From positions 62,001 through 126,000 of the IMG/VR virus record IMGVR_UViG_3300048597_000634: 64,000 nucleotides of DNA. One strand, given 5' to 3'. Below, one piece after another: positions 1-51,702 of this stretch. How positions within the stretch are numbered: position 1 is the first letter of the stretch; the number at the start of each line of letters is the position of its first letter. A program made the translations under genes and the position numbers. The notes under the pieces are model-generated. The model saw only the letters and a list, made by a program, of their open reading frames with translations. It did not search any database and had not been told where the DNA came from.

Positions 1-1
1 G

Positions 2-523: not shown

Positions 524-628
524 GGGTTTTCGGCTAGCTACCACATAATTAGTCAAAATCAACTAATTGTATGAGTAGGGGCTGACGCCCTATGTAGTGT
601 AATAAAAACATCACGCTAGTAGCACCTC

Positions 629-4225: not shown

Positions 4226-4247
4226 ATAGCGTATTCATTGTTCTAGT

Positions 4248-4281
4248 AATGGGGTAGGTATCTTGCGGTGCCTGCCCCATT
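4248..4281 (+). terminator. Stem-loop between sheath and tube genes (terminator/attenuator or mRNA-stabilising hairpin)
   Basis: Inverted repeat AATGGGGTAGGTA...TGCCTGCCCCATT followed by the T-rich TACTTTCGGATTTCTTTCT. Confidence 0.55.
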
Positions 4282-4300
4282 TACTTTCGGATTTCTTTCT

Positions 4301-5071: not shown

Positions 5072-5157
5072 TAAGCTGAACTTGGTAGAATCATAAGCGC
5101 TAGGGGTTCTATGAGCCTCGGCGCTTTAACTTATTTGTAGTAATAGACGTTGGTTGT

Positions 5158-6876: not shown

Positions 6877-6918
6877 TAATGCAGATATAGGTAATGCGTA
6901 TCTTCTAGGATTTTAATT

Positions 6919-8532: not shown

Positions 8533-8538
8533 AACATC

Positions 8539-38700: not shown

Positions 38701-41700
38701 CGGGGGCGAGTTATTTAGTTAAGCGTATTCGTGAATACCATAAAACAAAGAAAGCCAAAGAAGCTTTAGAGAGTAAGCGACCTGGTGCTTCTCCTGATGT
38801 AATTAATAATACGTCAGATGATGGTGATGTTGGGCGCGGTGGCGGGACGGATGACGCTGGTGGCGACGGAGTCCTTAGCCCCAGACCCGGCGGGGGTGGG
38901 GACGGTGGTAGTGTAGGTCCTGCACCTACTTTGAAAGATGCTGATGATAGAGCGTCTACTAGAGCAGTTTTAGACACCAGTAATACTTCTATGTCTACTG
39001 AAGAAGTGAAGGCGGTCATGTCTAGAGGTAATGTTTCTGTAGAGCAGTATGAAGGTAAGTCTAAGTCTCTACAAGAGTACCATTCCGAGAAGATAGAAAT
39101 TTACGATAAGAAGATAAATGCGTTAAATACTGAGAGATCAGCGTTGTCAGCAGAAATAGACGGCTTAATTACAGAAAGGCTAAGGTTAGATGACGCGTAT
39201 CAAAACTCGTCGGTTACCGGCGGTAAAGAGGTGTATGAAGCTATAGAAGCGTCACATAATGCCTCATTGAAGCAGTTAGACGATAAGTTAAAGCAAGTCG
39301 ACCAGAGAATAGTAGAGATTGACCGTACAATAAACGCCCATAGTAAAGGGAGGGTCGCGTCTCAAACTATCATTAGTGAGTTGGGTACTGCGTATACTAT
39401 CAGGCACCAGCAGTTTAATATGCCAGCGCCCGCACCCGACCTGGTAATAACTCCACAACCTTCTCCGACAGTTGTCGGCCCCCAGCCTACCCTAGAGCCG
39501 CCTGTAAGCCGTGGCGGAACTACAGTAGCTCAACCTGTTATGCGTGGGCGGAATGCTATTGTCACTGATCTTGGTGACGGTACTGTGAGAAAGACATTAG
39601 TGCCTGACGGACCTAACCCACAGATAGCTAACAATATTCAAGTTGAGGCTGCGATACAACGTAAAATGGCCATCTTTGGCGTATCTCCAGACGTAAGGTC
39701 AGTTAACGTAGATTCTTTTGTCATGCGTAAAGTTACAGGGCACGCAGTAAGTCCTCTAACTGGAGAGGCTCTAACAGCTTCTAGACTAATAGCGGCTAGA
39801 AAGTTAGCTTTATTACATAGTCTGGGTGTTGTACACGGTGATGTACACTCTGGCAACATACTTACATCACCAGACGGCACTAAAGCTACGGTTTTAGATT
39901 ACGGTTACTCTAGATTAGCCAGTGTAGAAGAAGCTTACTCTATGCTGAGCGACAATGTAACCGTAGATAGACTCAAGAATAATGAATTTACGTCTAGGCC
40001 TATGGCTGACGGGTCACTGGGACCTCGTACAGTTGGGTCTGACCTGTCTGGGCTAATCAATATGTCTGGGTCTGACTCTGAGGAAGTATTGAAAGTATAT
40101 AAAAGTGAAATGGACCGTCACCGGCGTATGCCTGATAGTGACAATGTCTTTAAACTAAATGAGTTGGGACTACCTCCTGAAATAGAAGCCCAGGTCAAAT
40201 GGACAAACTCATCCGAGATAACCCTGAATAATGGTAACTTGGCATCTAGGGGTGCTGACATTGTTGAACCTATCATTGCACAACCCCAACAATCTACTCA
40301 GGCTAGTAGACCTATTACTAGTGCCCAAGAGATAATTAATAGATCGGGCGGTGGGTCTTCTGTGCCTACTACACCTCAACCCTCAATAGAATCTCATGTA
40401 AAGCTTGGTAGCGGGTCTACATCCTCGGCACCCAACCCAGTTATCTCCCAACCAGAACTCTTGGATACTGATAATAAAGTGGTCGGCGCCCCTGTAGAGC
40501 CTGACCAGATTGTAGCTAAGGGCGGTGCTAATATGGTGAGTCCAATGCCATCACAAAATCTTGGTACCACTACTAACCCCTTACCTAACGTATCCAACTA
40601 CGATAACAATGTAGTATCTAATCCTTTAGACCAGACACCTAGTGGTTTAAACAAGCAGCAGCCTGGCGGTTACATAAACCTAGGCTCAGACTCTATCAGA
40701 CCTAATGACCCAGTCACTATCATAAGTCGGTCTGGGCGCGGTCTCGTAGGTAATGCCATAGACTCCGTTAAAGAAGCAGATTGGCAAACCCGCGGCACCT
40801 ACGCTAGCAACACTGTTAGCGCTGGTATGGCTACCTTTAACCTCTACCGAGGTGTCACTACCTTAGCTAAGAAAAACACCACAGGCTTTGAAAAGTCCTA
40901 CGGGTTTGAATACTTAAGTCAATCTGGCGCTGGCTACGCTACTACTTACCTCACCATTAAAGGCGGGCTTAAAGCGACTAAGGCGCTGCCTTACCTAAAC
41001 TATGCTAGTGATGCTATCTCATTAGCTTATGGGAGTCATCGTCTTAATACAGCTACTACTGAAGCTGAATATATTAAAGCTAAGGGGGATGTAGGCGGCG
41101 CCATTGGTGGGTTGGCCGGTAATGTTGCTGGGCAGGGTATTGGTTGGCTGGTTGGCGGTGCTATTGGTGCAGGTATTGGTGCTGTCATCGGCTTCTTTGG
41201 TGGTTTTGGTATAGGTGCCGGTGTGGGTGCCGCCGCAGGATTTAAGATAGGCTCGTCTATAGGGTCTATAGTCGGTTCTATCGCTGGCTCTATGTACGGG
41301 GAGCAAGTAGGTAGAGACTGGGTCACTAAGAATAAGTATGGTGCCGGCGATGCCGTAGAAGTGTTCGACCTTACTGGTAAATATAAGAAGACTCAGGAGG
41401 ATAAGGAGCAGCGTAGAGCAGCGTCCATGGCTAGACACGATGGCGGACCTAAAGTGTCTTATGTCAAACCGAAGGCTACTACTGGTACTAAAGCTACTGC
41501 GGTTAAGAGAGTAACCAAACCCATGAGACCTGGGTCTAATACGTCAAAGAATGGGGGAACTCGGTCTGGTGTTGATGGGCCAACGAATAATATAGTGTCG
41601 TTTAACCCGCTTAGTAACGTACCTGGGTTGGACTTGTTCTTTCCTAAACCAGCGGCGGCTAGTGATGTTATACCCACAAGCGCAAAGGTTTATACGGAAC

Positions 41701-44700
41701 CTACCCTTCCTAAAGATATCAAGAATGTAGACGTTGATGTAACATCACGGTCTTTAGAATCTAAGACCCAGGAAGAAAAGGAAGAGATAGAAAATAAGCA
41801 GTGGTATGAAGGGCTCTTTGAAGGGCTGGCAGCAATGGGTCGGAATATGACCAATACCATCAACAAGGCAGCTGAGTATGTAGGTGATTTAATTGGCGAC
41901 GCCTGGAATTTTGTGACGGGTGGGGGCGCTGACGCTACCTTTGCCGATGGTAAGTTTAGCGGAAGTATGGCTCCGTTGTTTAACCTCATTCATAAATATG
42001 AGTCGCCTGGCGCCGGCTTTGATGCGTTAAATCCTTCTACAACGGGTACTGCTGTGTATGGTAAACCTCTAACTGAGACTACTATCGGAGAGATTATGGA
42101 TAGGTCTCCACGAGGTGGCGGACGCGCCAGTGGTATGTTTCAGTTTATGCCTTGGATTAATGGCAAAGAAGGGACGCTATATAGCGCCATGAAAGCTGCA
42201 GGTTATACCAGAGACACAGTCTTTACTGCCGAAGTACAGACTAATATGGCCATTAAATTTTTGCCTAAGCACAGACCTGAATTATGGGCGTATTTAACAG
42301 GTAAGTCTGACAATATCAACGCAGCTATGGATGACTTTGCTCGTGAGTGGGCTGCATTCCCTAACTCTAGAGATACAGGTGCTTATTCAGGACAACGTTC
42401 TGCTGGATTTGAAGAAACCAAGCAGGCATTAATAGAAACTCGTAAGTTAGTTATGGCTTCTGGCTCTGCGGAGGCAGGGTTTCAAACTGGAGCTGCTAGA
42501 GTAGGGGGCGTAGTTAAGACTAACGTGAAGACTATTCGTGATGGGGGTGGCACTCCTTATCACATTGATATGATGTTTGACCGAAGCACGTCATGGGAAC
42601 AAAGGGTTCAGGTTTTTGACCAACTAGCCGCTGGTTATGCTGCAATGGGTCGTCGCATTGAGTTTAGTAATAGTGCTGTTTCTGGTCTTGTATACCGAAC
42701 TAATCTTACCCAGAAGCAGAAAATCGACATGTTAAAGCGTGTAGAGTCTGCTCATAGTAATAGAAAAGGTGGTAGCGGTCGTGCCGCCATGGACTTTTTT
42801 GTCCCGCAAGAAGGTCATGCTAGATGGACAGGCGGACCAGCCACTAGCGGCTCAGGGGCTAACGTTGAGTATTTATTACCGGTCATTGAAGGTGGTTATT
42901 ATACTGTGGGTGCCAAAGGTCGTTCAGGTCAACATATTCAAGCTTTTGATGCTAGTGGTAAGAAGATATATGAGTTCTTTCACGGTGGTGGTGGTCAGCA
43001 AGGACGATTTAATTTTTCTGGTGCTGGTAGCGGCGGCTCTATGCCACAAGCAACACAACAAAATAGACCGCCCCATCCTCTCACTAGAGGTGAAAAGAAA
43101 GTTACTAGTGGCACTACCGGAAAAGGTCAATCAGGCAGTGTTACCCACTTTAAATATGAAGAATACACAGGCAAACGGGTAAGCGTTGGTAACAACCAAA
43201 CTATGGCAGAGCCCGCTGCCATCGCATTTAAGAAAATGCAAGAAGCCGCCGCTAAAGAAGGCGTAACGTTACAAGCTCGTAGTGGCTTCAGGTCAGTTAA
43301 AGAACAAGGAGAGGTCTTTAAACGAGGCCTAGATAGAAGAGAAGGCAATGTTTACGAAAATACTTTATATATTGCCCCTGCCGGATATTCAGAGCATGCC
43401 ACGGGTTACGCCATCGATATTACGGGTACTCTCAGTGAAGGTCTAACTGCTGCTGTAGCTGATACCGCCGCCGGCAAATGGTTGGCAGCTAACTCTGCCA
43501 AGTTCGGCTATCAAATGTCTTTCCCTAAAGGAAATGCCGACGGCGTCACTTATGAGCCTTGGCACTTTAGGTTTATGGGTGATTACTACGAAGGTAGTGA
43601 ACCTGATACGTCTACTGACGGAGTTTATGTACCCAGTGAGGGTGGTAGTATAACTCGACAACGACCCCAACGACGAAAAGTAACTTCCTGGGCTGAGCGG
43701 GAACGTCGTGCACAAGAACGCATTAAGTCTGGTCAGGTTAGGCGTGAAGTTAATATCGGAACACCAGCTAAAAATAATGGTGTACGTCAAGGCGGTGCCA
43801 AGGTACAGACTAAAGCTGAAGAGCTGCCCAAGAATATTCAGACTAATGATGTACCTGCCATGTCTAATGACCGTCGTGGTGTTAGTGGCTCTAGCGGGGG
43901 CTCGGGCGGAGGTGGTGGCGCCGGGGGCGGTAGTTCTGTAATAAGTGGACCCGTTTACACTCAGGGAGATTTAGGGTCTCCGGGAGCATTCCACTTTGAC
44001 ATCAAACGAGTCGAAGGCGGGTTTTATGAACGTGATTACCTAGACAATTATGTCCAAGTAAATGGTAAGCCTATAGGCACAGGTATTACAGTTAAGGGTG
44101 GAGAGTACGGAGCCCCTAGGTCTTACGGTGGTCATGGTGGCTGGGACTATGCCTTTGGGGATAAGAATGCCGGGCTTAGTCTTGTTAATGGTGCCCGCTT
44201 AATCAGCGTTACACCCACTAAGACCTATGGTGATAAGCTAATATTCCAGCTTCCTACTGGAGAACAGTTCGCTATTATCCATGGACGAGCTACTGCCTTG
44301 GGTAAAGATTCCGCTGGAGCGGAAGGAGCATATGCTCAAACTGATGGCTCGGTCAGTTTGGCTAGTGGCGGTGGGGGCCGTGGCGGTTACAGATATATGC
44401 AGCCGCCTCGTAGAAAAGTCACTTCCTGGGCTGAGCGAGAACGTCGGGCTCAGGAACGTATTAGATCTGGTCAAGTTGTAAGGCAGTCTTACGTTACTAA
44501 CCCAAGTAGAACCCGTAATAACCAAGTGAGACCCGGCGGCAACATTACCCAAAGCGGCGGCGGTTTTGGTTGGTTAAAGCTACCTTCCTTCTTTAGACCG
44601 CAATCTACTAACCAAGACAAAGTTTCAGCGATATATGAACCTGATGCTAAACGTAATGCTCGCCAGAAAGACTTACTCAAGACTATTCCTTCTAACCAGA

Positions 44701-45116
44701 AAGACTTAGACGTAGATGAAATCCTTGACACTAAGGTTACCCAGGCTTCAGATGAGGCTATGTCTAATGCAGAGATTATCGGTAATGTAATCGCTGAGGC
44801 GGCGGCCAAAGCCTATAAACAAAAACAAGAAGCCACCCCAGAAAAAGCCGTTCATCATATTACTAACGTCCAACGTCCGGCGGAGACTGCCCTTAACGTT
44901 AACAGCTACTCGCGGGCCATCACCAGTAACATTACCCGTGCTACTAAAACACAAACTGTTTATCAACCGGACAACGACCAAAATGTTATCTTGGTCAGCT
45001 CTCAAGTAGACCACACTATGGTAAATGTCAATGTGGCTAACAGTGGAATTAAATCGCCGTGCGGGTGGCAGATGGCGGGTAAGAAACAAAGAGTACAGGG
45101 ACCTTGTGTTGCCTAA
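26772..45116 (+). CDS. Giant (6114 aa) tape-measure-like/ejected polyprotein with PLD-like, kinase-like, muramidase, M15 and M23-like domains
   Basis: 18.3-kb uninterrupted ORF with a long Ala/Gly-rich amphipathic/hydrophobic core. Kinase motifs HGDVHSGN..DYG; lysozyme-like YES..ASGMFQF..AREWAAFP; VanY/M15B SGFRS..SEHATGYAID..YEPWH. Confidence 0.75.
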   Translation: MAGTFGYTSVNNDHQLKFNVPDRFSASRTGQVRPESGSNPYVVYSETHTVFNLEQSLSRFKRGTVETDNFLVTAPPDSFLGWALGKTESQVLAKQGVTRVQQSEFSFGANKSKIHVPAETQGIGRLRSFLERVNLNGEPPLVSGAGVDPNVPKEIEQKLAHFKITTGDIDAAALGQYEGITDGNNSPVEAPTKVAVQTTAMYGNYQFHGTWGIVGGALSFKRDSSGITDLGRGAYTQGYMDTSIHIEDPRYLRMVDDWSKDKYATRGVFRSEDYSKEGQEKLEGVKLLRNVSIHEEAIRETAAYIEALSPRSATAERLSEGKQITNKDLENIRKEYAEDLEVIQSDMQAAGAMYYMSGPAMGYNETNLSDNTVAGIRRQQVKQTLDQIETLKQLGIKPVIHTDINRMDIDTGSKRRLLEEAYVVQTHTFFGMSQQQAHHNVSGLVIPNLDIDSQAGSRLKEAGLASESGLAGFISLGTARLIGSFAYEMGIQVDLDAAPDSYVDAIMGSIGRTLNVGAVYRQRKDAAYQGPSGADLSSFYKPTYRDVRSGNFQEIGLLPVMPNEMPDDFFEYYGGLSTRIYSDRYQALYGTKATGMQGHVLERLDAKLSAPGFGMGLNQLFRQDDLYTPGQGLAGFLATSIGRVFDTVSGHYTMQRIKKQHDGDLSGSLGEYQQKIIEQEHFRAIEQRGFFENLFNTLTTTIADTSLSMASYFGVTHAYSIAKAQIEDAGSKHILDVVTGAVGEGKAHTSILMLTGGHSKLFEEANQLHELMDKVGGFDSIKSASSLGDYLLAVQDFTSGQDVTIAEGATDSVFGWYKKKKDVEGFMRTPTGPGAAPVSALGEQQLFDFLDDIYNVKPGLDDDLASLVKKKLGQANTNSIDPAALRKAYAKALEEMGITINLPTSGNAHVSGSVELARSLDNANSGAIHMPDAVGFRNIRAVRRLDSANLTNMFLPFLDNAVDLSTEASKEGYLKAREQLVDLARAKPVLTFDSSVQGEHTNKILHYGYDRLTDLARTFDDLAQYLPAYPLLWIKPIRDAFNRYELAQGKTKDDILGTRRSFRDLIGPGFTGLLSLQGEVSRTIGSIAQVGVGKYVTNTLEVFKLQGQASVLEAKIANSFKESYKFIAQVHGAANNVNFDDVLQAFIDRLQDPKKSGINQQDFEELAKLHSEISLKINKTPGLKYSTGHNELGAPGEDSYAGLRKFLFSAGAVLIADRIIDHFFIKPQGVDLGDSLMSHIFGTVSPEVEGREEDAKVLAGYSQNYSHTAPAIFKYPAATAGYAIGGLVFPSVYHQASHLKYWTSATKGKQFTSDQVELVTQVASGITQGLQGITPNATKEQLAEAFAKGSANAFAGSNKLRFGYAGAFVGASLALLATQAITSVVASTLEPLVALGDTAFRGRWHDPRKGLELDPIKGSAAAIFAKAHRQGAARAAALSQRAEARGGKAGDYMDYTSRGSMVVAWLLSSSMTVSAQQPGRLFYPFATQIAAPFYQFAMVGKLDPSSNQITMQSGLQLFPLSGVGFMVPSMFNPATKYTPSIAEQFLINQLTDLTPGMNQRALIGDDSDVEQRKEAYSLLKASSGILSLALGSGLNPTFDYRPVMFIGGLTALQSAEQVLGKSVGRLKPDSALYKELKNYETVYSIASMGLNVTDKLTRGAFSLSLTGVNYLTHSITAFLGRGELSLFKAGPAARKLMPFYLSAMLVAGMLRPGQTTTEHQSDHIGSLIENLTEGNTFGAVRLEQDHLTNYVLATAIGSAGFGGALTASGAFENVADWANEAGTGYIGLKKQEMYKTYLEHLGKIGVSVDDAADFRKQLMVSIKRGENVTTLLSQVNRQQLPLLQSGAARLGMASRVLAPILLGSFVAAQFLSLTDFYDHSNPVSYLLRGLTDTGRGAQMTYEQKAMLSNLGIKGARYQPKNVGEAVSNVGDYLLRSVFFMGNPSKSMGTYQDAPSPFLGLGGPFGVSGQQDMMKSYMQSQSVAADVSGSFYLMPAMASEFNNAKSLGPLLAAAQRNPNLTDSRAVALYRATLMRKSRATYKNNISAGESAAISSPTLQIAIGRRSDEVRRLAWQTGEGHMLDLLTTMAAAGRIKTEATTNFISNAGATIYDFVGNNFRIQPTNIAGNPVRFSIQTNAEFARAMWTMAKGSNTQTDINTMLYDSERVQDAGPNPVTGYFGNIMSYAFGTFYDRTLDEYGPSFHNILPAAALAFSAVGLSAMLTGTAITSVVQGIGALGALQVYGTLADSARNLDQARQNVTHVIQSTSYGIGRDNKLMKQVGSVMSEMDMTGGVTEEAITALNSVFGKRNQVGSLGKFSNSLAGKASQLASMSASNTNDITEVLRQIKADFNDSVEGLQKGFNMSNDAFKEMLEGIFDATDSTLVAGINNILRNMPLEETRRQEIEILLLQHMQNNMDPLRNTSGFKLTDAAPSDKSRIVYNSLSDKKTMSASSAFINTVLDQEGYSGLFKRSTGGLFRASFAMFDMKAAYEFASFAAASSDPMDELERRRSSYAAAASLFQTFGMIIPGQVVLGTLAKNPTLAVAAMVAAVGIGSVAYANKGFRKKVSNFFKPKFKWADRNIIKPTIRSIASALDAVGSIGAVQTMLSPVRVITSGLDPMFTNMRRRAARIPGVNFIADMFIPETKESFYDRWSEQTPTMTAYGPRMELYTRAEIEQDRKNRIESRRRRGGQLNAGISVELMSGFLQGRPDSTELGRMRLERLTKGAGRVASEHIGYSYVSPLIHLAVKRRQQEIDSYGNALLGPLVPETRGSAAPILSLSTSVMRYSLHSTGSLIQAPMDVAGKGAAITIKSFAWLNDAFTKVKDSKLVFGLIGGAKAAPNNQMFTWAAAGVIGSSILADRLGWTQKEDKKWQTAGLVIGAGATAAVARPYAGAAFNMLADQDNFAGKNIRKLRRINMNAITDLAVKVGMGGLKWTKGLFSHASQWARTQSWSRIAANTGYSGAAIVGATMLLSPAVDDFLGWGEDPKKENDRKLLDRRRMTAIGVTAGVSLLARLGATWKPNLAGSAVNKVGGSVTRLATFGVSTLAVFKLSKVVMANQITGFGFNTAFNVGYGLLNLEDDAQGRAKAQAYEATTSTIAFGLTVGYAYNVYGKELINKARGIAPTHVGWAAFRHNVKSGLKNIFTPVTFGAPYWGQIRGLLGGGWNAVYNSNNLAGRALRPTGRYLGMAKDMLPKLPPGWNEPVNKFFGRKINWLINAQNAANPTKAQYAAFDAEQIGLREPARKLAIKKWGTVASHAAKLTPLIMDTATIAAAHHRYTKVDPKDHLGNYKEAYRAYYQSSAMTAVSSVLSAISGGDKKVGLVSTLLTTTQVSDIAGRMAEEWATKDLYSGRLLTEQRAGQDSYFSPESAAGVGALTLSAAATASYYKVGVFKSARWDKTANFMATHAGQVAQTAITAYNWQDTWRAGRQRYSGTNPNYIAAQRSSDLGKGALYAAAMLSLASKNPSSGGKNLALRTAGVVTFTAAAMAMDNTESYFAKQHTLAVREAGIRDVYVKNLIQREAAESTLGYGAAGAAIAGLTVASLLAFKGKGTPFWSKASYALLSAATGGSAASFFGHQWQLNKGIQKYKDGITPEQYLERQRWIDNGAYTPDSWRNTDQNRMQWLLWNTDSVNARNQVRRGRTGAAIGLGNLSSSYVTPDMIAAAQDRELRARYGQPITFTSTVQFVGGATILAANTFRYEKGLGAVGVTFRQHIKPTATLFDTVAGSAKDMSLWQKGKSIGGSTLNAGFQALPLMSYYFAAQGAKEQITKHSGRYSSGRMTTAQYLQATALSRRAYMARSEALYDAYLPGSSSIMRSIISGVAFGAAKGALSGVLDSKAIDDERRWIERNKEGLNLSSLNLAKANRASRKYLTGGSGTDKVVGLATGVTTLSINLSAGFITGGPVGIFTGLITSIVPGLQNQAIAKANISRHRARNVLLEKGNEVGHEGILDDLSGIGADGYGMMALNMGISSGASYLVKRIREYHKTKKAKEALESKRPGASPDVINNTSDDGDVGRGGGTDDAGGDGVLSPRPGGGGDGGSVGPAPTLKDADDRASTRAVLDTSNTSMSTEEVKAVMSRGNVSVEQYEGKSKSLQEYHSEKIEIYDKKINALNTERSALSAEIDGLITERLRLDDAYQNSSVTGGKEVYEAIEASHNASLKQLDDKLKQVDQRIVEIDRTINAHSKGRVASQTIISELGTAYTIRHQQFNMPAPAPDLVITPQPSPTVVGPQPTLEPPVSRGGTTVAQPVMRGRNAIVTDLGDGTVRKTLVPDGPNPQIANNIQVEAAIQRKMAIFGVSPDVRSVNVDSFVMRKVTGHAVSPLTGEALTASRLIAARKLALLHSLGVVHGDVHSGNILTSPDGTKATVLDYGYSRLASVEEAYSMLSDNVTVDRLKNNEFTSRPMADGSLGPRTVGSDLSGLINMSGSDSEEVLKVYKSEMDRHRRMPDSDNVFKLNELGLPPEIEAQVKWTNSSEITLNNGNLASRGADIVEPIIAQPQQSTQASRPITSAQEIINRSGGGSSVPTTPQPSIESHVKLGSGSTSSAPNPVISQPELLDTDNKVVGAPVEPDQIVAKGGANMVSPMPSQNLGTTTNPLPNVSNYDNNVVSNPLDQTPSGLNKQQPGGYINLGSDSIRPNDPVTIISRSGRGLVGNAIDSVKEADWQTRGTYASNTVSAGMATFNLYRGVTTLAKKNTTGFEKSYGFEYLSQSGAGYATTYLTIKGGLKATKALPYLNYASDAISLAYGSHRLNTATTEAEYIKAKGDVGGAIGGLAGNVAGQGIGWLVGGAIGAGIGAVIGFFGGFGIGAGVGAAAGFKIGSSIGSIVGSIAGSMYGEQVGRDWVTKNKYGAGDAVEVFDLTGKYKKTQEDKEQRRAASMARHDGGPKVSYVKPKATTGTKATAVKRVTKPMRPGSNTSKNGGTRSGVDGPTNNIVSFNPLSNVPGLDLFFPKPAAASDVIPTSAKVYTEPTLPKDIKNVDVDVTSRSLESKTQEEKEEIENKQWYEGLFEGLAAMGRNMTNTINKAAEYVGDLIGDAWNFVTGGGADATFADGKFSGSMAPLFNLIHKYESPGAGFDALNPSTTGTAVYGKPLTETTIGEIMDRSPRGGGRASGMFQFMPWINGKEGTLYSAMKAAGYTRDTVFTAEVQTNMAIKFLPKHRPELWAYLTGKSDNINAAMDDFAREWAAFPNSRDTGAYSGQRSAGFEETKQALIETRKLVMASGSAEAGFQTGAARVGGVVKTNVKTIRDGGGTPYHIDMMFDRSTSWEQRVQVFDQLAAGYAAMGRRIEFSNSAVSGLVYRTNLTQKQKIDMLKRVESAHSNRKGGSGRAAMDFFVPQEGHARWTGGPATSGSGANVEYLLPVIEGGYYTVGAKGRSGQHIQAFDASGKKIYEFFHGGGGQQGRFNFSGAGSGGSMPQATQQNRPPHPLTRGEKKVTSGTTGKGQSGSVTHFKYEEYTGKRVSVGNNQTMAEPAAIAFKKMQEAAAKEGVTLQARSGFRSVKEQGEVFKRGLDRREGNVYENTLYIAPAGYSEHATGYAIDITGTLSEGLTAAVADTAAGKWLAANSAKFGYQMSFPKGNADGVTYEPWHFRFMGDYYEGSEPDTSTDGVYVPSEGGSITRQRPQRRKVTSWAERERRAQERIKSGQVRREVNIGTPAKNNGVRQGGAKVQTKAEELPKNIQTNDVPAMSNDRRGVSGSSGGSGGGGGAGGGSSVISGPVYTQGDLGSPGAFHFDIKRVEGGFYERDYLDNYVQVNGKPIGTGITVKGGEYGAPRSYGGHGGWDYAFGDKNAGLSLVNGARLISVTPTKTYGDKLIFQLPTGEQFAIIHGRATALGKDSAGAEGAYAQTDGSVSLASGGGGRGGYRYMQPPRRKVTSWAERERRAQERIRSGQVVRQSYVTNPSRTRNNQVRPGGNITQSGGGFGWLKLPSFFRPQSTNQDKVSAIYEPDAKRNARQKDLLKTIPSNQKDLDVDEILDTKVTQASDEAMSNAEIIGNVIAEAAAKAYKQKQEATPEKAVHHITNVQRPAETALNVNSYSRAITSNITRATKTQTVYQPDNDQNVILVSSQVDHTMVNVNVANSGIKSPCGWQMAGKKQRVQGPCVA
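43671..44477 (+). repeat. Internal duplication RRKVTSWAERERRAQERI.SGQV (69 bp x2)
   Basis: Copies at 43671-43739 and 44409-44477, differing mostly at synonymous sites. Confidence 0.9.
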
Positions 45117-46186
45117 TCTTCATATAGCCGGTCTCTAATCTTCTCCCAAGCCTTGGCGTGGTCTGATTCGGTTAGCCATGCATTATAAGTACTGGTGTGA
45201 ACTTGGTGACTATGGCGCATCTGCTGTGCTGCCAGTCTACTATCTAATCCTAACTCGATGGAGCGCCGTGCCCAACAGTGCCTCAAGTTATAAGGGGGGA
45301 ACGGTATGCTGGCTCGATTAAACGCCCTGGAAATGCGCTGTCCATTTTCCCTATTACTCTTACCGTTTATGTTCGGTACCCTCACGTTCTTTAAAGCAAA
45401 TAAGTCTACCCAGTGGGGGTATAACGGCCATACCTTCCCACTGTGAGATTTACTACTCAGCCCGTTCTTCTCCGTTACGTAACATATACCGGTCTCTACT
45501 AGATAATCAAGGTCTATAAGGAAAACCTCATGGTTTCTTAGTGCGTAAGTTGCCATCATTCCGTATGCCCAACGATAGGGCTCATAACTGAATTGTTTAA
45601 CTAGCTGTTCTATCTCAGCGTCGGTTGGTAATAACCGTGGCTTTACTTGTTTCTGACTATAGTTGCCTTTTAGTTTAGATACGTCTAGCTCTAAATCAAA
45701 CTCAGTTGCCAGTGCCTTAAACGCTTGGCACATTAATTGTCTGCTACGAGTATTGGCGTCACTAGACTTAATCACGTCAAGCAATATGCGAGGGGTTAAG
45801 TCTTTATTGTTGGGTAATTTCTTAAAGGCGTCTCCGTAGTTACTACTCCAAGTAGTCTTAGTCTTTGTATCGATACCGCGCTCAACGAAGTACTTCTCCT
45901 TAAATAGCTCTATGGCTTCAAGGATAGTAATGCGGTCACGCTTTGGCTCCCAGGCGAAACTACCCTCCGCTAACTGAACACCTAACTTCTTAGCCTCTAA
46001 CTCTGCATGCTTAAACCCCATAGAGTTGGCATTAATACCTAAAGCTATTCGTTGTTGGTAAGGTTCGGTACGGTCACTGTTCGGCTTAGGAGGCAGCGTG
46101 GCCACTAGGTAAAGTTTTTCTCCCCTCTGCTCTATCTGGACTTTTACCTTACCTGCTTTTAACCTGGCATTGACTGAGTTAAGCAT
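45113..46186 (-). CDS. int: Tyrosine recombinase/integrase, cyanobacterial type
   Basis: YALRNHE, YNLRHCWA and MRHS..VH..TY catalytic motifs. N-terminal NARLKAGKV.V.IEQRG..LYL.ATLPPKP is typical of cyanobacterial integrases. Confidence 0.9.
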   Translation of the reverse strand: MLNSVNARLKAGKVKVQIEQRGEKLYLVATLPPKPNSDRTEPYQQRIALGINANSMGFKHAELEAKKLGVQLAEGSFAWEPKRDRITILEAIELFKEKYFVERGIDTKTKTTWSSNYGDAFKKLPNNKDLTPRILLDVIKSSDANTRSRQLMCQAFKALATEFDLELDVSKLKGNYSQKQVKPRLLPTDAEIEQLVKQFSYEPYRWAYGMMATYALRNHEVFLIDLDYLVETGICYVTEKNGLSSKSHSGKVWPLYPHWVDLFALKNVRVPNINGKSNRENGQRISRAFNRASIPFPPYNLRHCWARRSIELGLDSRLAAQQMRHSHQVHTSTYNAWLTESDHAKAWEKIRDRLYED

Positions 46187-46195
46187 ATCAAAAAC

Positions 46196-46243
46196 TGGCT
46201 TAAAATTGGCTTAAATGTCCGTCGATCATTGCCAATTTAAGCC
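46196..46243. promoter_or_regulatory. Putative integrase arm-type sites (left arm of attP)
   Basis: TGGCTTAAA at 46196 and 46207, inverted TTTAAGCC at 46236. The same doublet recurs at 47164-47183. Confidence 0.65.
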
Positions 46244-46254
46244 TGTTTTGTCAA
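46225..46254 (-). promoter_or_regulatory. Putative sigma70 promoter of the integrase
   Basis: TTGACA-N18-AATGAT on the minus strand, overlapping the inverted repeat copy. Confidence 0.4.
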
Positions 46255-46318
46255 GGGTAGTCTGTAGGAGTTAGCCTAAATAAACGAAGTGCGTATAGTA
46301 TTCGAACTAATTGTTTAT

Positions 46319-46948
46319 TTAGTCTGGTAGAGGACATGCCTGCCCTTCAAATTTACCTGCCTTTATTTTGTTCCAGAATCCTCTTCCTGGACGAGGGACA
46401 CCATACTTTATACACTGCTTCTTAACTGCCGTATCGCTGACACCTAAAGCCACAGCAACATCAGTTATTGGTTTATCCCATATTTGTTTATGTAGGTTAA
46501 GTCTAGCCTCTTCGTCGTCTTTGATTTTTATTACAGATTTAGACTTTGCTGCACAGGAATGGGAGCAGAATTTTTGCTCTCTTTTGCCTCTCCTTACACT
46601 CGGGGCAAATGCTGCACCGCAGCAGGGGCATATCTTAGTGGGCTTTTCTCGACACACATAAGTACCGTCAGCTAAAAGTAATAGTTCCCTAGATTCAGGG
46701 TCTAAGTTGTGAAAACGAATGTGGTCACCGTTTGTTTTAAAGACAAGGAGATTATCTATGTCATTATTCTCCTTATTCTCATCTATATGGTGAACAGTTT
46801 CCCCGGGAGCTAGAGGGCGTCCCAGCATAATTTTTGCAGCCTTTCTGTGTATATAATCCAATCTACTTTCTTCCTGATTAAAGTAGTAAAAATAGCCAGC
46901 CCGCTTTGCTTGTTCAACCATAGATGTTAGTAGGTTCGACTCTTTCAT
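46319..46948 (-). CDS. HNH homing endonuclease with Zn-finger and HTH
   Basis: YIHR...LGRPL...ETVHHIDENKENN...NL...H motif; CPCCG..FCSHSC; C-terminal VAVALGVSDTAVKK HTH. Confidence 0.9.
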   Translation of the reverse strand: MKESNLLTSMVEQAKRAGYFYYFNQEESRLDYIHRKAAKIMLGRPLAPGETVHHIDENKENNDIDNLLVFKTNGDHIRFHNLDPESRELLLLADGTYVCREKPTKICPCCGAAFAPSVRRGKREQKFCSHSCAAKSKSVIKIKDDEEARLNLHKQIWDKPITDVAVALGVSDTAVKKQCIKYGVPRPGRGFWNKIKAGKFEGQACPLPD

Positions 46949-47010
46949 TGTAGCAGAATCGAACCAGCTAACAGCGCTAATAGCTATATGCTCAAATGGA
47001 CACCTACATA

Positions 47011-47048
47011 AAAGAAAAAGCCCTCTATAGGTTCGAACCCATATGAGG
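47011..47048 (-). terminator. Intrinsic terminator-like hairpin downstream of the tRNA fragment
   Basis: Minus strand CCTCATATGGG-TTCGAA-CCTATAGAGG followed by GCTTTTTCTTTT. Confidence 0.55.
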
Positions 47049-47076
47049 TCATCTTTTCAATATAGATGCAGTCTTT

Positions 47077-47131
47077 AACCTGCGACCGTCCGCTTAGAAG
47101 GCGGATGCTCTATCCACTGAGCTACGCACCC
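47077..47131 (-). pseudogene. 5' 55 nt of tRNA-Arg(UCU), truncated in the T-loop (likely attP identity block)
   Basis: GGGTGCG TA GCTC AGTGGATA GAGC A TCCGC CTTCTAA GCGGA CGGTC GCAGGTT: perfect D and anticodon arms. The expected CGAATCCTGC-CGCACCC 3' end does not follow. Confidence 0.9.
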
Positions 47132-47147
47132 AGGCTTGCCCTTAATA

Positions 47148-47153
47148 ATTATA
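47148..47153 (-). promoter_or_regulatory. -10 box upstream of the tRNA fragment
   Basis: TATAAT ending 16 nt upstream of the tRNA 5' end; no clear -35. Confidence 0.45.
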
Positions 47154-47163
47154 TCTTCAACAG

Positions 47164-47183
47164 TGGCTTAAAATTTGGCTTAA
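47164..47183. promoter_or_regulatory. Putative integrase arm-type sites (right arm of attP)
   Basis: TGGCTTAAAATTTGGCTTAA, nearly identical to TGGCTTAAAATTGGCTTAA at 46196. Confidence 0.65.
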
Positions 47184-47210
47184 CTATTAACTTGTTGTTT
47201 ATATCATAAC

Positions 47211-47244
47211 AAGCTGGTGGTGAAAAAGCAACCCCTACCAGCTT
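47211..47244. terminator. Stem-loop ending the leftward early operon
   Basis: AAGCTGGT...ACCAGCTT inverted repeat in AT-rich intergenic DNA downstream of the last minus-strand ORF. Confidence 0.5.
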
Positions 47245-47309
47245 ATTTATTTTTGGTTCTTAAACATACTGTCAATATATCTTTTATATTTGTTTGGCAG
47301 AGATATTAA

Positions 47310-47552
47310 TTAGAACTCAGCAGGAGCAATGATTTGCCAGATATTTTCTGTGCTTTCACTGTCTAAACTTGCGCTTGCTGTTGACGTCAATATCTCCAGT
47401 AGTTGGTTGGGGTCATAGATTCCACTACTGTGGTCGTCGTAGACTTTTACCCCGTCGTCGTCAACATCTACACGTAGTCCGCTATAAGGGTCGTGCTCTG
47501 CAGAGCATTTAAGGCTGTCAATTTCTTTGTTAATTAGTTTAATAATAGACAT
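47310..47552 (-). CDS. Small acidic hypothetical protein
   Basis: Probable ATG 47552 (MSIIKLIN); the track start 47612 overlaps the upstream gene. Confidence 0.55.
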   Translation of the reverse strand: MSIIKLINKEIDSLKCSAEHDPYSGLRVDVDDDGVKVYDDHSSGIYDPNQLLEILTSTASASLDSESTENIWQIIAPAEF

Positions 47553-48846: not shown

Positions 48847-49407
48847 TTAATTATTAACATTTAGGACTTGTCCAGTAGCACTTACGATAATGCCGGTGGC
48901 TTCAAATTCTTCTACTGCTTGTAGCAGTCTATTATCTAAACCAAGGCTTATATCTAGTAGAGCTATGTACGGATAGTGGAAGTTAACGTTGGCGCCGCCG
49001 GCGGCTATGGCAGTCATATAAAGAGCCTCGTACTCAGACAGCCCCCACATGACGTAGAGGCCGGCGATTAGACTATGACTTAACTGCTGGTAATTCAACT
49101 GATATACAAACCTCACCAAATCACATTCGTTTAATAGCCGGCTATGTACTTTATACAAAGCGCCTATACAGTCAAAGGCTTCAGTGAAGTAGTCTATCTG
49201 GTCAAATTCATTGTCTAGCTCATATAAGGGGTCTATGACGGGGTCATGGATTATCCCTATGGATAGACTTGGTGTTTGGTCGTCTGGGGGCGGCGGCGCC
49301 CGGTCAAACCCACCCACATAAACCAAGCCTTCTTCATTCTTATGGTTACTGGGTAAGTTTGACCATTGGAAGGTAGTCAGTAATTCTAACCTTGGCAGGC
49401 TAGACAT
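48847..49407 (-). CDS. Possible degenerate protein-tyrosine-phosphatase-like protein
   Basis: C-terminal YIALLDISLGLDNRLLQAV resembles small bacterial PTPs, but the HCxxGxxRS motif is absent. Confidence 0.35.
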   Translation of the reverse strand: MSSLPRLELLTTFQWSNLPSNHKNEEGLVYVGGFDRAPPPPDDQTPSLSIGIIHDPVIDPLYELDNEFDQIDYFTEAFDCIGALYKVHSRLLNECDLVRFVYQLNYQQLSHSLIAGLYVMWGLSEYEALYMTAIAAGGANVNFHYPYIALLDISLGLDNRLLQAVEEFEATGIIVSATGQVLNVNN

Positions 49408-51641
49408 TCATCTCCTCCCCCTTCCGAGTGATAGTTCTGCTTAATCACTTTCTGTTCTAGCTCCTGTTGGCGTTTAGCGGCTAACTGCCCAGACCGCCCC
49501 TCGGCGTTCTGAATAGCTTGTGACCGACAATAATACAACGTCTTTAACCCCAAACGCCAGGCTTCAAAGTGAACCTTAGCAAAATACGTCGGGTCGGGCT
49601 CAGCAGTAAAGAATAGATTCACTGATTGGGACTGTCCCTGTAAATGCCTGTCCATCTCTACCTGACGCTCAGCGGCTTGCTTGACAATAGCCATCTGGTT
49701 AATTTCACGGGCGGTTAGGAATACTTCCCGCTCTAAGTCAGACAAGAACGTCAAGTGTTGTACACTGCCCCGGGCTTCTGTAATAGAATCCCAAGTCTCA
49801 TCGTCATCTTTACCGTACTCAGCTAATACCTTTTGTAAGGTGGGGTTGTGAAAGAACATAGAGCCGCGGCTAGTCTTCTTCTCGAAGCTATTAGCGGCGA
49901 AGGGCTCAATACCAGGGCTAACATGACCACAGATGATTGAGTTAGTTACCGTGGGGGCACATGTCACTGTATGGGTATTGCGAGTGCCTGTACCTTCACA
50001 CCATTCAGGCTCGCCGTATTCTTTATACATGTCGACACTAGCCCGATGGGATTCATCTGCTATATGTCGGAATACAGCTCGATTTAATAAGCTTGCTCCG
50101 AATGATTCGAAGGGTAGGCGGCGCTCTTGTAGTAACGAATGCCATCCCATAGCCCCTAACCCTAACATCCGGCTTTTAACGGCGAAGCGGTAGGCATTAT
50201 CAAAGTACGGCTCACCTTCGATTTTGTCTATGTACTCTTGCATAACGCCATCTAAGAACCATGTAGCCCAATACACCGCGTCAGTCTCCCGCCATTCATC
50301 CCACTTAGCCAAGTTCATAGAACTCAAGCAGCACACGAAGGTATGATTTGGATCGGTGTAGGCGGTAATCTCGCTACAGTTGCCTGTCATCCGTCCATCC
50401 GCCAAAGCAAACATGTTAGTAGTGGGTACAGTGGTGCAATATACAGGCACCGGCTCTTCCATATACACCTTGGCTACCCGTTTAATCAAACCTGTAACCT
50501 TCTTCAGGTGGGTTAATACTTCTAGGAAAGGGTGGTCGATGCGGCGGTATTGCTCGCATAGTTCCCCGGCGGTGACGAACTCTACTTTCTGTGTAGTGCC
50601 AAAACGCCTAACTGGTAGGCGGTGTTCTGGTGTGACATCAATGGTACTATCATCGCCGAAGGTAATACGAATAAAGCGGTCGTTAACACCTTTTTGTTCA
50701 AAGGCATCGTTCTGTACCCAGTCTTTTCCATCCCAGATACTTACTGCCTTACCTACCAGGTCTTTAATGGCCACAGGACCGTCTTTAGTCCTTACCAGTG
50801 CATCCCCTTTAAGGCAGATGTTAGATGTTTTTACTTTCAGTCCTAAGCGGTTATAACCAGGGGGATTAACGCGGTTAACGTTGTCTGTGAAGAACAGATA
50901 AGGCTCGCCGGTTTCAATCCTAGTCCGTAGAATTTGACCAAATAATTCCCGGGCCTCGCCGCCGGCTTGGATAGCCAACATATCTTCATCGGTGAAGCAT
51001 ACAGCATGGTGGATGTTCATACAGCGCTGGTTCTCATCCCCTGTAGGGCGCCGCATGTTAATGAATTCTTTAATGTCTGGGTGGTTAAACGGTAAGTAAA
51101 CCGCCGATGCTCCTTTACGTACCCCGTTTTGGCTAACGCCTACAGTAGTGGAATCTAATATCTTGCACCATGGGATAACACCTTCTGAGATATAACCCCC
51201 GCGGATGGCAGCCCCACGACCTCTAATGTCCCCAGCATAGATGCCAACCCCTGCTCCTTTAGAACTTAAATGAGCTAGCTCAGCAACACCGTGAAATATA
51301 CCACCGAGAGAATCCTCTATGTGTAGGCTGTTACAGCTTATAGGAAAACCACGGGTGGTGCCTAAGTTAGCAAACACTGGGCTAGCTGGTCCAAGCCACC
51401 CAAGCCACATAATCTTAAAGAATCGTTGGGCTAAGTCAGGTCGTTTAAGAGCGCGGGCGGAGGCTTCTGATAACCTCACATAGGCATCCCAGGGGGTCTC
51501 ACCGTCTAATAGATAGCCAGACTTGAGCATATAATAGCCTTCAGCAGTCATCCAATCTGGTACGCCGTTGTCTGGTTTAGTGAAGCCTTCAGTGGTATTG
51601 AATTTGAGATGGGCTTGGGGCAGTCGAGGGAAGATAAACAT
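49386..51641 (-). CDS. nrdA: Class I ribonucleotide reductase alpha subunit, one intein
   Basis: PASPV..N.G, PISC, SNI[intein]CSEI, VCCLSS.N, APT, KTLYY and C-terminal CLACQG motifs. ATG 51641 is preferred to 51758. Confidence 0.95.
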   Translation of the reverse strand: MFIFPRLPQAHLKFNTTEGFTKPDNGVPDWMTAEGYYMLKSGYLLDGETPWDAYVRLSEASARALKRPDLAQRFFKIMWLGWLGPASPVFANLGTTRGFPISCNSLHIEDSLGGIFHGVAELAHLSSKGAGVGIYAGDIRGRGAAIRGGYISEGVIPWCKILDSTTVGVSQNGVRKGASAVYLPFNHPDIKEFINMRRPTGDENQRCMNIHHAVCFTDEDMLAIQAGGEARELFGQILRTRIETGEPYLFFTDNVNRVNPPGYNRLGLKVKTSNICLKGDALVRTKDGPVAIKDLVGKAVSIWDGKDWVQNDAFEQKGVNDRFIRITFGDDSTIDVTPEHRLPVRRFGTTQKVEFVTAGELCEQYRRIDHPFLEVLTHLKKVTGLIKRVAKVYMEEPVPVYCTTVPTTNMFALADGRMTGNCSEITAYTDPNHTFVCCLSSMNLAKWDEWRETDAVYWATWFLDGVMQEYIDKIEGEPYFDNAYRFAVKSRMLGLGAMGWHSLLQERRLPFESFGASLLNRAVFRHIADESHRASVDMYKEYGEPEWCEGTGTRNTHTVTCAPTVTNSIICGHVSPGIEPFAANSFEKKTSRGSMFFHNPTLQKVLAEYGKDDDETWDSITEARGSVQHLTFLSDLEREVFLTAREINQMAIVKQAAERQVEMDRHLQGQSQSVNLFFTAEPDPTYFAKVHFEAWRLGLKTLYYCRSQAIQNAEGRSGQLAAKRQQELEQKVIKQNYHSEGGGDECLACQG
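50379..50816 (-). mobile_element. Mini-intein (146 aa) in NrdA
   Basis: Begins CLKGDALVRT, has block B VTPEHR, ends VYC.TV...TGN before extein C(SEI), the thiyl-radical Cys of the NxCxE motif. Confidence 0.92.
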
Positions 51642-51670
51642 TAGTCTATTAGGCGATATGAAGGAAAGAG

Positions 51671-51692
51671 CGGGCTGATTGCAGTCAGCCCG
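51671..51692 (-). terminator. GCAA-tetraloop hairpin between nrdB and nrdA
   Basis: Minus strand CGGGCTGACT-GCAA-TCAGCCCG followed by CTCTTTCCTT. Confidence 0.5.
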
Positions 51693-51702
51693 GGTTGGTT
51701 GC

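Follow-up and report, generated by a model that had tools for sequence, protein, structure and literature searches.

A predicted cyanophage attachment site built on a host tRNA-Arg gene is split by an HNH endonuclease gene

Why would a large cyanophage carry the first 55 nt of a tRNA gene beside an integrase gene, with the remainder of the tRNA displaced by a nuclease gene? We examined this locus in a 64,000-nt stretch of DNA (hereafter the window; positions 62,001 to 126,000 of IMG/VR record IMGVR_UViG_3300048597_000634), which belongs to a 205,544-bp cyanophage genome. The original prediction described window positions 46196-47183 as an attP-like site on a tRNA-Arg gene split at the T-loop by an HNH cassette. 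It proposed that either a homing nuclease had invaded attP, altering lysogeny, or the integrase replaces the 5' end and promoter of the host tRNA. The observation held, as each element it described was present at or within a few bases of its predicted position. One claim required correction: after removal of the insert, the two arms are not equidistant from the T-loop. The relevant centre is instead the anticodon loop, which in HNH-less relatives lies about 80 nt from the outer arm and about 148 nt from the integrase-side arm.

We first analyzed the repeats that bracket the site. TGGCTTAA occurs at 46196 and 46207 and again at 47164 and 47176 (+ strand), spaced 11 and 12 bp, respectively. The whole genome holds only 8 copies of this octamer on both strands, about the number expected by chance, but four of them form these two tandem pairs, 968 bp apart. 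A fifth copy, inverted and one base shorter, lies at 46236-46244. Read on the minus strand, the repeats form two tandem doublets of TTAAGCCA. The putative P' arm (46196..46214) lies 9-27 nt upstream of the integrase ATG, and the putative P arm (47164..47183) lies 83 nt from the anticodon loop. A promoter-like site for the integrase gene (TTGACA, 18 nt, AATGAT) is located at 46225..46254 (-), with the inverted arm-like copy in its spacer. A promoter and terminator scan called only this site in the expected place, and its counts were no higher than those from shuffled sequences, although the TTGACA block is conserved in three integrase relatives (L001, L002, and L004).

The adjacent gene, at 45113..46186 (-), encodes an intact 357-aa tyrosine integrase of the XisA/XisC type. 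Its protein carries the Pfam families PF27551 and PF27132, named XisAC_N and XisAC_2nd in the gene tables of its relatives, whereas the local match to Pfam Phage_integrase was weak (20.4 bits, below the cut-off). In an alignment of 13 members, R217, K246, Y299-x-L-R302-H303, H325/H330, and Y334 were invariant. YxxR replaces HxxR in box II, which is typical of XisA/XisC. We identified 479 homologs, mostly in cyanobacteria. In contrast, tblastn with the integrase found no phage relative, and pattern and protein scans of IMG/VR for the tRNA piece and the integrase found nothing. A blastn search of the region against GenBank phages hit only tRNA-Arg genes of T4-like cyanophages, the listed ones at 87%.

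Next, we examined the tRNA segment between the arms. Positions 47131..47077 (-) are exactly the first 55 nt of tRNA-Arg(UCU), ending GCAGGTT, and comprise the acceptor 5' strand, the D arm, the complete anticodon stem-loop (loop at 47094-47100), the variable loop, the T-stem 5' strand, and TT. Six cyanobacterial genome records carry the same 55-mer in a chromosomal tRNA-Arg(tct) called by ARAGORN: Synechocystis salina, a Synechocystis MAG, two Merismopediaceae MAGs, and two MAGs labelled only Cyanobacteriota. The gene appears to be single-copy in those genomes. A perfect TATAAT at 47148..47153 (-), 16 nt upstream of the tRNA 5' end, is a candidate phage promoter for the 5' half. This is inferred from a lone -10 hexamer, which the two-hexamer scan did not call.

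To investigate whether this arrangement represents an attachment site, we compared it with its relatives. Integrase relatives at 53-72% identity show the same layout, with an outer doublet followed by a tRNA or its 3' part, a terminator, a second doublet, and the integrase ATG. An equivalent doublet lies directly before the ATG in relatives L001-L006, in two HNH-bearing relatives (L017 and L024), and in about half of 29 chromosomal homologs, and the arm sequence changes with integrase lineage. The spacing between the P arm and the anticodon loop is 80-83 nt in the window, L001, L002, L005, and L017. In a complete cyanobacterial chromosome (G013) with the same TTTAAGCCA arms, the doublets sit just inside both ends of a 19-kb element integrated in tRNA-Met, whose ends are the tRNA and its 52-bp repeat. 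The repeats flanking integrated relatives start at tRNA position 26 in G013, 23 in G078, and 27 in G142. In G013 and G078 the repeat runs through the 3' end of the tRNA, whereas in G142 only positions 27-50 match. Moreover, L005, L001, and L004 carry only the part from the anticodon stem onward. In another record, L012, a chromosomal tRNA-Arg has the phage-type doublet 38-49 nt upstream and host genes downstream, resembling an attR remnant. No lysogen, attL, or attR of this phage or of a close relative was found, and searches for sequencing runs listed none.

These comparisons also bear on the possibility that the tRNA piece is merely the wreck of an ordinary phage-encoded tRNA killed by a homing endonuclease, with the doublets acting as operators for the integrase gene or another regulator. 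L002 and L003 carry full tRNAs here, L003 has further tRNAs nearby, the doublet overlaps the region between the integrase promoter and the ATG, and this HNH clade is typical of phage tRNA arrays. However, a 3' part alone, as in L005, L001, and L004, is useless for translation, the same doublets flank the integrated element in G013, and the spacing between the P arm and the anticodon is fixed across lineages. We therefore consider this explanation very unlikely.

We then asked whether the tRNA had been contiguous before the nuclease gene arrived, a point that had been set in advance as a refuting condition. L002, an HNH-less relative whose integrase is 70% identical, has an intact, contiguous tRNA-Arg(tct), called by ARAGORN, between the same arms. 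Its first 55 nt plus 2 nt of leader are identical to the window at 56 of 57 positions, and a 21-nt stretch at the P' arm is identical to L002 positions 5980-6000. An analogous pair, L006 without the HNH gene and L024 with it, exists for tRNA-Thr(CGT). Thus, otherwise homologous alleles with and without the gene exist, and about 770 bp entered the T-loop of the tRNA in the window.

The insert holds several elements. At its 5' end (47010..47076, -) is a decayed tRNA-like piece (47019-47076) that resembles the spare tRNA-Thr of sister cassettes and ends in a hairpin plus a T-run (47010-47019). The resemblance was supported by a multiple alignment and a fold, but it is statistically modest and suggestive only (p=0.001 against the tRNA carried by L024, p=0.02 for L022, and p=0.047 for L020). 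A conserved leader hairpin follows at 46925..46973 (-), ending a few nt before the HNH start, with a -10-like TACAAT in its loop. It folds with z=-4.3 here and z=-4.8 to -5.9 in L017, L020, and L024, with paired changes in both arms. The HNH gene itself (46319..46948, -) matched Pfam HNH_3 at 1.6e-08 and an RWP-RK-like family at 1e-06, consistent with a C-terminal helix-turn-helix-like domain. Its relatives start at the second ATG, so that the likely true start is 46921 (200 aa). The HH..NN..N..H motif (columns H44, H45, N52, N53, N57, and H67) and five Cys are invariant in 8 relatives. The gene has no second copy in the genome and no match to the HNH_3 gene of L003.

A mutated 3' remnant of tRNA-Arg, GTTCGAAT..CGCAC..CGTT (46307..46283, -), begins 12 nt after the stop codon. 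Its local alignment to the native 3' end beat all but 0.15% of shuffles (p=0.0015). The T-loop is kept and the acceptor strand is partly kept, but the T-stem 3' strand is replaced, in agreement with the broken T-stem of the original prediction. The remnant sits in the loop of a weak 10-bp hairpin (z=-1.6). Analogous remnants follow the HNH stop within 1-8 nt in L017, L020, L024, and L060.

We also considered whether the insert is a self-splicing or otherwise removable intron, or whether the two pieces are joined in RNA, so that the phage still makes a working tRNA-Arg. Cyanobacterial tRNA genes host group I introns, both pieces lie on the same strand in the right order, and Rfam reports a tRNA hit above its gathering score (38.8 bits), which rests on the 5' part. 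However, an Rfam search at E up to 10 over 45900-47500 returned no intron or ribozyme family, only the tRNA hit and noise. Only about 128 nt before the ORF and 12 nt after it are non-coding, and the 3' remnant cannot form the T-stem. The contiguous 69-nt Rfam alignment has no T-arm and needs three G-U pairs in the acceptor stem, and we rejected it as a gene. ARAGORN found no tRNA in the window or in the whole genome. An intron or a joined tRNA is therefore highly improbable.

To place the nuclease, we examined the genomic contexts of its relatives. Relatives at 49-59% identity split tRNA-Arg or tRNA-Thr genes in attPs (L017 and L024), in a chromosome-like contig (L020), and in a phage-like contig (L060). 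Four contexts (L017, L020, L022, and L024) carry a spare tRNA or 3' half. Among 25 distant full-length relatives, 22 lie inside co-oriented phage tRNA arrays. The native T-arm is altered in the four HNH-bearing alleles where it could be compared (the window, L017, L020, and L024), and it is from these altered flanks alone that we infer the HNH target. The window and L017 may have been invaded once or twice: their HNH proteins and integrases are each 56% identical, but the junctions differ (tRNA position 55/56 versus 43/44), and the closer relative L002 lacks the gene. We also considered that the 5' half reached attP by co-conversion during homing, but rejected this idea because HNH-less L002 also has the full tRNA and HNH-bearing L024 lacks the native 5' half.

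Overall, these results support the original interpretation, and we favor, with fair confidence, the view that the region is the attP of a temperate-type cyanophage of Synechocystis or Merismopediaceae, served by the XisA/XisC-family integrase. In this view, the doublets are its arm-type sites, the core is the anticodon stem-loop of tRNA-Arg(UCU), and the ancestral site held a whole tRNA-Arg gene between the arms. A free-standing HNH homing-endonuclease cassette then inserted into the T-loop, from a family whose members live in or next to tRNA genes and probably cut the variable-loop/T-arm part of them. Sister cassettes carry a replacement tRNA or 3' half, so the invaded gene still yields a tRNA, whereas in this phage the spare has decayed, the displaced 3' end is mutated, and no functional tRNA is encoded. 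The two originally proposed alternatives are not exclusive: a homing nuclease did invade attP, and replacement of the host 5' end and promoter is what the anatomy predicts, because the core is kept but the 3' part is dead. As the P arm, the 5' half, and the anticodon core are untouched, recombination with the host gene should still be possible. The junction next to the integrase gene would then carry a broken tRNA, and the far junction would join the phage promoter and 5' half to the host 3' half and restore the gene. The insertion thus probably changes which prophage end rebuilds the host tRNA. Our analysis establishes the anatomy of the site, the HNH-less allele, the tRNA integration of this integrase family and where its crossover region starts, and the association of the HNH family with tRNA genes. 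By contrast, we infer recombination by the integrase and its binding to the arms, cleavage of the native T-arm region by the HNH protein, the function of an attP whose P' arm lies about 740 bp further out, integration of this phage at tRNA-Arg, and expression of the tRNA from the far junction.

An alternative is that the insertion inactivated attP, leaving an obligately lytic phage in which the integrase, arms, and 5' half have not yet decayed. The P' arm is 886 nt from the core instead of about 148 nt, which may disable an intasome that needs fixed geometry. Searches of the genome for excisionase-like (HTH_17) and HTH_3 genes were negative, and, as noted above, no lysogen was found. Conservation of the 5' half could also reflect a recent insertion or exchange with the host gene, rather than selection for rescue. 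However, the integrase has no defect and keeps all invariant residues, and the 3' remnant and the spare have drifted while the 55-nt 5' part is still identical to the host gene. Moreover, two other lineages keep integrase, arms, and core around the same kind of insert with nearly the same spacing, as the distance from the core to P' is 886 nt in both the window and L017 and 874 nt in L024. We consider a relic site unlikely, although it is less easily dismissed than the other alternatives.

A more speculative possibility, which we put forward only tentatively, is that this HNH clade is a self-compensating homing element for tRNA genes, which splits its target but brings a nuclease-resistant spare tRNA or 3' half. 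Because phage attP cores copy tRNA genes, it would repeatedly colonise attP sites. With the spare lost in this phage, the integrase system would compensate: the intact 5' half and phage promoter would replace the host's own 5' half and promoter at the far junction, and the host's only tRNA-Arg(UCU) gene would come under prophage control. The near-identical core-to-arm spacing in three invaded sites would then reflect selection to keep the enlarged attP working.

The locus resembles several known systems, each with differences. Like tRNA-targeting tyrosine integrases with an anticodon-loop crossover (Williams 2002 classification), including that of the 37-kb Anabaena variabilis element in tRNA-Cys (bioRxiv 10.64898/2025.12.09.693284), it has an integrase next to a site that copies part of a host tRNA, with arm-type repeats on both sides. 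In integrated relatives the duplicated block starts at the anticodon stem and, in two of three, runs to the 3' end. Here, however, the site holds the 5' part plus the core while the 3' part is destroyed, so lysogeny should break the usual rule that the element supplies the tRNA 3' end and keeps the integrase-side junction functional. A published Anabaena element does duplicate the first 38 bp of tRNA-Cys (bioRxiv 10.64898/2025.12.09.693284). The integrase shares its N-terminal and second domains with XisA and XisC of Anabaena/Nostoc (nifD and hupL elements), a family known mainly for developmental excision in heterocysts. It is shorter (357 aa versus 472-498 aa), is carried by a phage, and is inferred to target a tRNA gene rather than a protein-coding gene, and tandem arm doublets are not part of the classical 11-bp or 16-bp Xis targets.

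Free-standing homing endonucleases in phage tRNA regions, such as T4 SegB (Brok-Volchanskaya 2008, cited in PMC8421152; PMC13096335), and the HNH gene all8564 next to cyanobacterial tRNA arrays (PMC8421152) are likewise embedded among or next to tRNA genes, are present only in some alleles, and have altered flanks in nuclease-bearing alleles. In the window and the closer relatives, the gene instead sits inside a tRNA gene and splits it, the cassette usually brings its own replacement tRNA or 3' half, and the invaded copy in the window is the core of a phage attP. As with intron- and intein-borne homing endonucleases, a selfish nuclease gene is inserted inside a functional gene with a device that spares the function of that gene. 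Here the device is a duplicate gene segment rather than RNA or protein splicing, and in this phage it has failed.

These findings highlight a collision of two mobile systems that both exploit tRNA genes and here meet on the same 75 bp, with an attP core that copies a tRNA acting as a landing pad for a putatively tRNA-specific nuclease gene. They also tie the heterocyst Xis recombinases to a large family of tRNA-integrating elements, present in 77 of 301 cyanobacterial genomes sampled. The arm motif, the fixed spacings, and the XisA/XisC-type integrase provide a recipe for finding attachment sites and hosts of uncultured cyanophages. Finally, IMG/VR labels the record a provirus. If the record were integrated through this site, attP could not be contiguous, yet it is contiguous here, and both ends of the record carry phage-type genes. 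We therefore treat the label as a trimming call rather than as evidence of integration here.

We first placed the site in its genome. The window covers bases 62001-126000 of a single 205,544-bp virus record with 46% G+C. IMG/VR labels this record a provirus, 91% complete, but both ends look phage-like: the left end (1-9000) holds a TnpB/IS605-OrfB gene, and the right end (196545-205544) holds a second, unrelated HNH_3 gene, a Bro-N/ANT antirepressor, PhoH and ThyX. Because the site studied here is contiguous in the middle of the record, the record is not integrated through this site. ARAGORN found no tRNA gene anywhere in the genome.

We then read the site on the minus strand, from 47183 down to 45113. 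A doublet of TTAAGCCA (47183-47164), the putative outer or P arm, is followed by a perfect TATAAT (47153-47148) and by the first 55 nt of tRNA-Arg(UCU), ending GCAGGTT (47131-47077). Next come a tract ending in a hairpin and T-run (47076-47010), a long hairpin (46973-46925) and an HNH_3 ORF running to 46319. The sequence GTTCGAAT ACTATA CGCAC TT CGTT (46307-46283) begins 12 nt after the stop codon, and is followed by a TTGACA-type promoter-like site (46254-46225), a second TTAAGCCA doublet (46214-46196), the putative P' arm, and the integrase ATG (46186). The octamer occurs only 8 times in the genome on both strands, and 4 of those copies form the two doublets. The observation in the original prediction, a tRNA-Arg 5' part and an HNH gene bracketed by matching doublets next to the integrase, was therefore confirmed.

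The 357-aa integrase carries the XisAC_N and XisAC_2nd domains and keeps the invariant R, K, YxLRH, H and Y residues of its family. We found 479 homologs, mostly in cyanobacteria, and a sample of 301 genomes of the host's order has a homolog in 77. In 14 of the 29 best chromosomal loci, a co-oriented tRNA gene lies 140-240 nt upstream of int, and in most of these, as well as in two further loci that hold only a T-loop motif, a tandem doublet spaced about 11 bp lies directly before the ATG. The tRNAs include Met, Phe, Cys, His, Leu, Glu, Lys and Arg. The doublet sequence differs between lineages and includes TTTAAGCCA, TTTAGGCAA, TTTAGTCCA, TTTAGGGAA and others. Synechocystis salina LEGE 00031 carries a longer family member (locus L015, G002:C97), a 506-aa integrase homolog preceded by the 3' part of a tRNA-Thr(UGU), whose arm repeat is different: ATGTCGCCAG three times.

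To examine where the family integrates, we analyzed integrated elements in chromosomes. In the complete cyanobacterial chromosome G013, whose arms are the same TTTAAGCCA, the full tRNA-Met is followed by the P' doublet and int, and 19 kb further on lies the P doublet, 55-75 nt before an exact 52-bp repeat spanning tRNA position 26 to 3 nt beyond the 3' end. In a second genome, G078, the repeat spans positions 23-76 of tRNA-Phe, and in a third, G142, it starts at position 27. These results demonstrate that the family integrates in tRNA genes and that the recombining core is the anticodon stem-loop, in agreement with what is proposed for the Anabaena 37-kb element in tRNA-Cys. Just beyond attR of the 19-kb element, downstream of the 52-bp repeat (locus L055, G013:C1:2959108-2962159), lies a second, degenerate P' region with a TTTAAGCC doublet and an integrase start truncated after a few codons, suggesting that elements have piled up in tandem at this tRNA-Met.

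Subsequently, we compared six metagenomic contigs (L001-L006) whose integrases are 53-72% identical, and these showed the same layout. Between the arms, L005 carries tRNA-Arg(UCU) from the anticodon stem onward only, L001 and L004 carry the 3' part of a tRNA-Pro(UGG)-like gene, L006 carries tRNA-Thr(CGU), and L003 carries a reversed tRNA-Thr(UGU). L002, with a 70% identical integrase and collinear flanking genes, has a complete ARAGORN-called tRNA-Arg(tct), a terminator and no HNH. The first 57 compared bases of L002 are 56/57 identical to the window, whereas the integrase genes are only 67% identical in DNA, and homology stops exactly at GCAGGTT. The distance from the P doublet to the anticodon loop is 80-83 nt in the window, L001, L002, L005 and the HNH-bearing locus L017, and the distance from the anticodon loop to the P' doublet is 148-149 nt in the HNH-less sites (L001, L002, L005, L006).

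The whole P-core-P'-int module of the window (45113-47183) is inverted relative to its flanking genes when compared with L002 (5748-7080) and L003 (5693-7080). In L002 and L003, the giant ORF is followed by the P arm, tRNA, P' arm and int on the same strand, whereas in the window the giant ORF ends convergently on int, and the P arm faces the downstream minus-strand genes, which are collinear with L002. The giant ORF of the window (26772-45116) is a single 6114-aa frame that ends 4 nt inside the integrase gene; relatives have 5029-aa and more-than-5313-aa counterparts, one of which carries a Phage_lysozyme2 domain. A stem-loop followed by a T-run lies on the plus strand just outside the P arm (47209-47250), with no plus-strand gene upstream of it, and would make sense as the terminator behind int if the module once had the L002 orientation.

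Next, we searched for the host gene. The 55-mer occurs exactly in the chromosomal tRNA-Arg(tct) of Synechocystis salina LEGE 00031, a Synechocystis MAG, two Merismopediaceae MAGs and two MAGs labelled only Cyanobacteriota, and the gene appears once per genome in the five of these genomes searched. One locus from a Merismopediaceae MAG (L012) is unusual in that the chromosomal tRNA-Arg has a TTAAGCC doublet 38-49 nt upstream, the same spacing at which the phage P arm sits (40-52 nt in the window and L002). On that side (L012 2190-4300), a GmrSD_N protein and a HEPN protein lie between the host tgt gene and the doublet, and ordinary host genes (NdhM, pyrophosphatase, phycobilisome) lie downstream. 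This looks like the far junction of an old integration, in which an element supplied the promoter side of the gene, and the GmrSD/HEPN pair looks like a small defence island left by it.

We then analyzed the insert and its relatives. The HNH protein keeps the catalytic HH..N..H motif, five conserved cysteines and a C-terminal helix-turn-helix-like domain, and it is single-copy in the genome. Its closer relatives all sit inside tRNA genes. In L017-L019 (56% identical), the order is P doublet, tRNA-Arg(UCU), leader hairpin, HNH, displaced 3' part, terminator, P' doublet and a XisAC integrase. The first 43 nt of this tRNA equal the window's and are followed by a different variable loop, T-arm and acceptor strand, while the displaced 3' part follows the stop codon by 2 nt and holds a variable loop, a T-arm with changed but still paired stem, and an acceptor strand. 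In L024 (54%), the native anticodon arm of tRNA-Thr(CGU) is followed by a complete, different tRNA-Thr(CGU), the hairpin, HNH, a remnant starting at the T-loop, the P' doublet and a XisAC integrase, making it the invaded counterpart of L006. In L020/L021 (51%), a chromosome-like contig (DUF3493, amidotransferase, diacylglycerol kinase), the 5' part of a tRNA-Thr(CGU) up to the variable loop is followed by a complete spare tRNA-Thr(CGU), the hairpin, HNH and a scrambled remnant. In L022/L023 (59%), an anticodon-arm fragment is followed by a spare tRNA-Thr(CGU) and HNH. In L060 (49%; 2430-3130 of a 104-kb metagenomic contig), a tRNA-Thr(UGU) is split immediately after the anticodon loop, with a perfect T-arm and complementary acceptor strands on the two sides, but no anticodon-stem 3' strand and no spare. 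The hairpin of the window (46925-46973) ends a few nt before the HNH start codon, is conserved with paired changes in L017, L020 and L024 (z -4.3 to -5.9) and has TACAAT in its loop; it would hide the ribosome-binding region unless transcription starts inside the loop, as described for T4 intron ORFs.

Among 25 more distant full-length relatives of the HNH (L061-L203; 30-37% identical) from phage contigs, many of them gut-type contigs of 85-160 kb, 22 lie within co-oriented tRNA arrays, mostly less than 100 nt from a tRNA and often only 5-60 nt from the next one. The association of this clade with tRNA genes is therefore general, and it recalls T4 SegB and the HNH gene beside cyanobacterial tRNA arrays. 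In the three invaded attPs, the anticodon arm stays joined to the P-arm side. In the four alleles where the native T-arm could be compared (the window, L017, L020 and L024), it is changed in every copy, which is the pattern expected if the nuclease recognises the variable-loop/T-arm part of the gene and nuclease-bearing alleles are immune, although both recognition and immunity are inferred here from sequence alone.

In the window's own cassette, the displaced remnant (46307-46283) matches the native 3' end better than 99.85% of shuffles but has lost the T-stem 3' strand. The 58 nt after the break (47076-47019) align with the spare tRNA-Thr of L024 from its D-loop to its 3' end (p=0.001; weaker for L022 and L020) and end in a hairpin plus T-run. 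So the window probably descends from a Thr-type cassette whose spare was truncated on entry into tRNA-Arg and has since decayed, a reading that is suggestive rather than proven. Neither piece can complete a cloverleaf with the 5' part: an Rfam tRNA hit of 38.8 bits owes its score to the 5' 55 nt and has no T-arm. No intron family was detectable in the Rfam search.

These findings support the original interpretation of an attP-like site on tRNA-Arg that was split by an HNH cassette. To it our analysis adds the integrase family (XisA/XisC type) and its arm motif, the position of the crossover region, the host clade, and the finding that the HNH is not a chance visitor but belongs to a family that is specialised for tRNA genes, usually carries a spare tRNA or tRNA part, and has entered at least three phage attPs. 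Whereas these points rest on the comparisons themselves, the consequence for lysogeny is inferred, as are recombination at this site and expression from its phage promoter region. The crossover region, anticodon stem-loop positions 27-43, lies within the intact 55 nt. Recombination with the host gene would give a junction next to int in which the host 5' part is joined to the phage's T-stem 5' strand and the cassette, a broken gene, and a junction at the far end in which the P arm, the phage promoter region and the phage 5' half are joined to the host's 3' half, a complete gene. In this view, most relatives need only the 3' part, whereas this phage would depend on its 5' half. That fits the perfect identity of the 5' half to the host gene while the remnant and the spare have drifted, the single-copy state of the gene in the host, and what looks like the same kind of junction in the chromosomal locus L012.

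The distance from the anticodon loop to the P' arm is 886 nt both in the window (46196-47100) and in L017 (1605-2510), although their HNH and integrase are each only 56% identical and the cassette interiors differ, and it is 874 nt in L024 (60-953). All three lineages keep an apparently intact integrase, although the L024 contig holds only its first 78 codons. This argues for tolerance of the insert, with P' moved outward, but does not prove it. The difference of 12 is close to the 11-12 bp arm spacing, so helical phasing may be preserved. Elsewhere in the window, a 790-aa ribonucleotide-reductase-like ORF (49386-51758) appears to contain an inserted segment beginning CLKGDALV, which looks intein-like by eye, and a further locus, L016, shows inteins in a neighbouring large gene.
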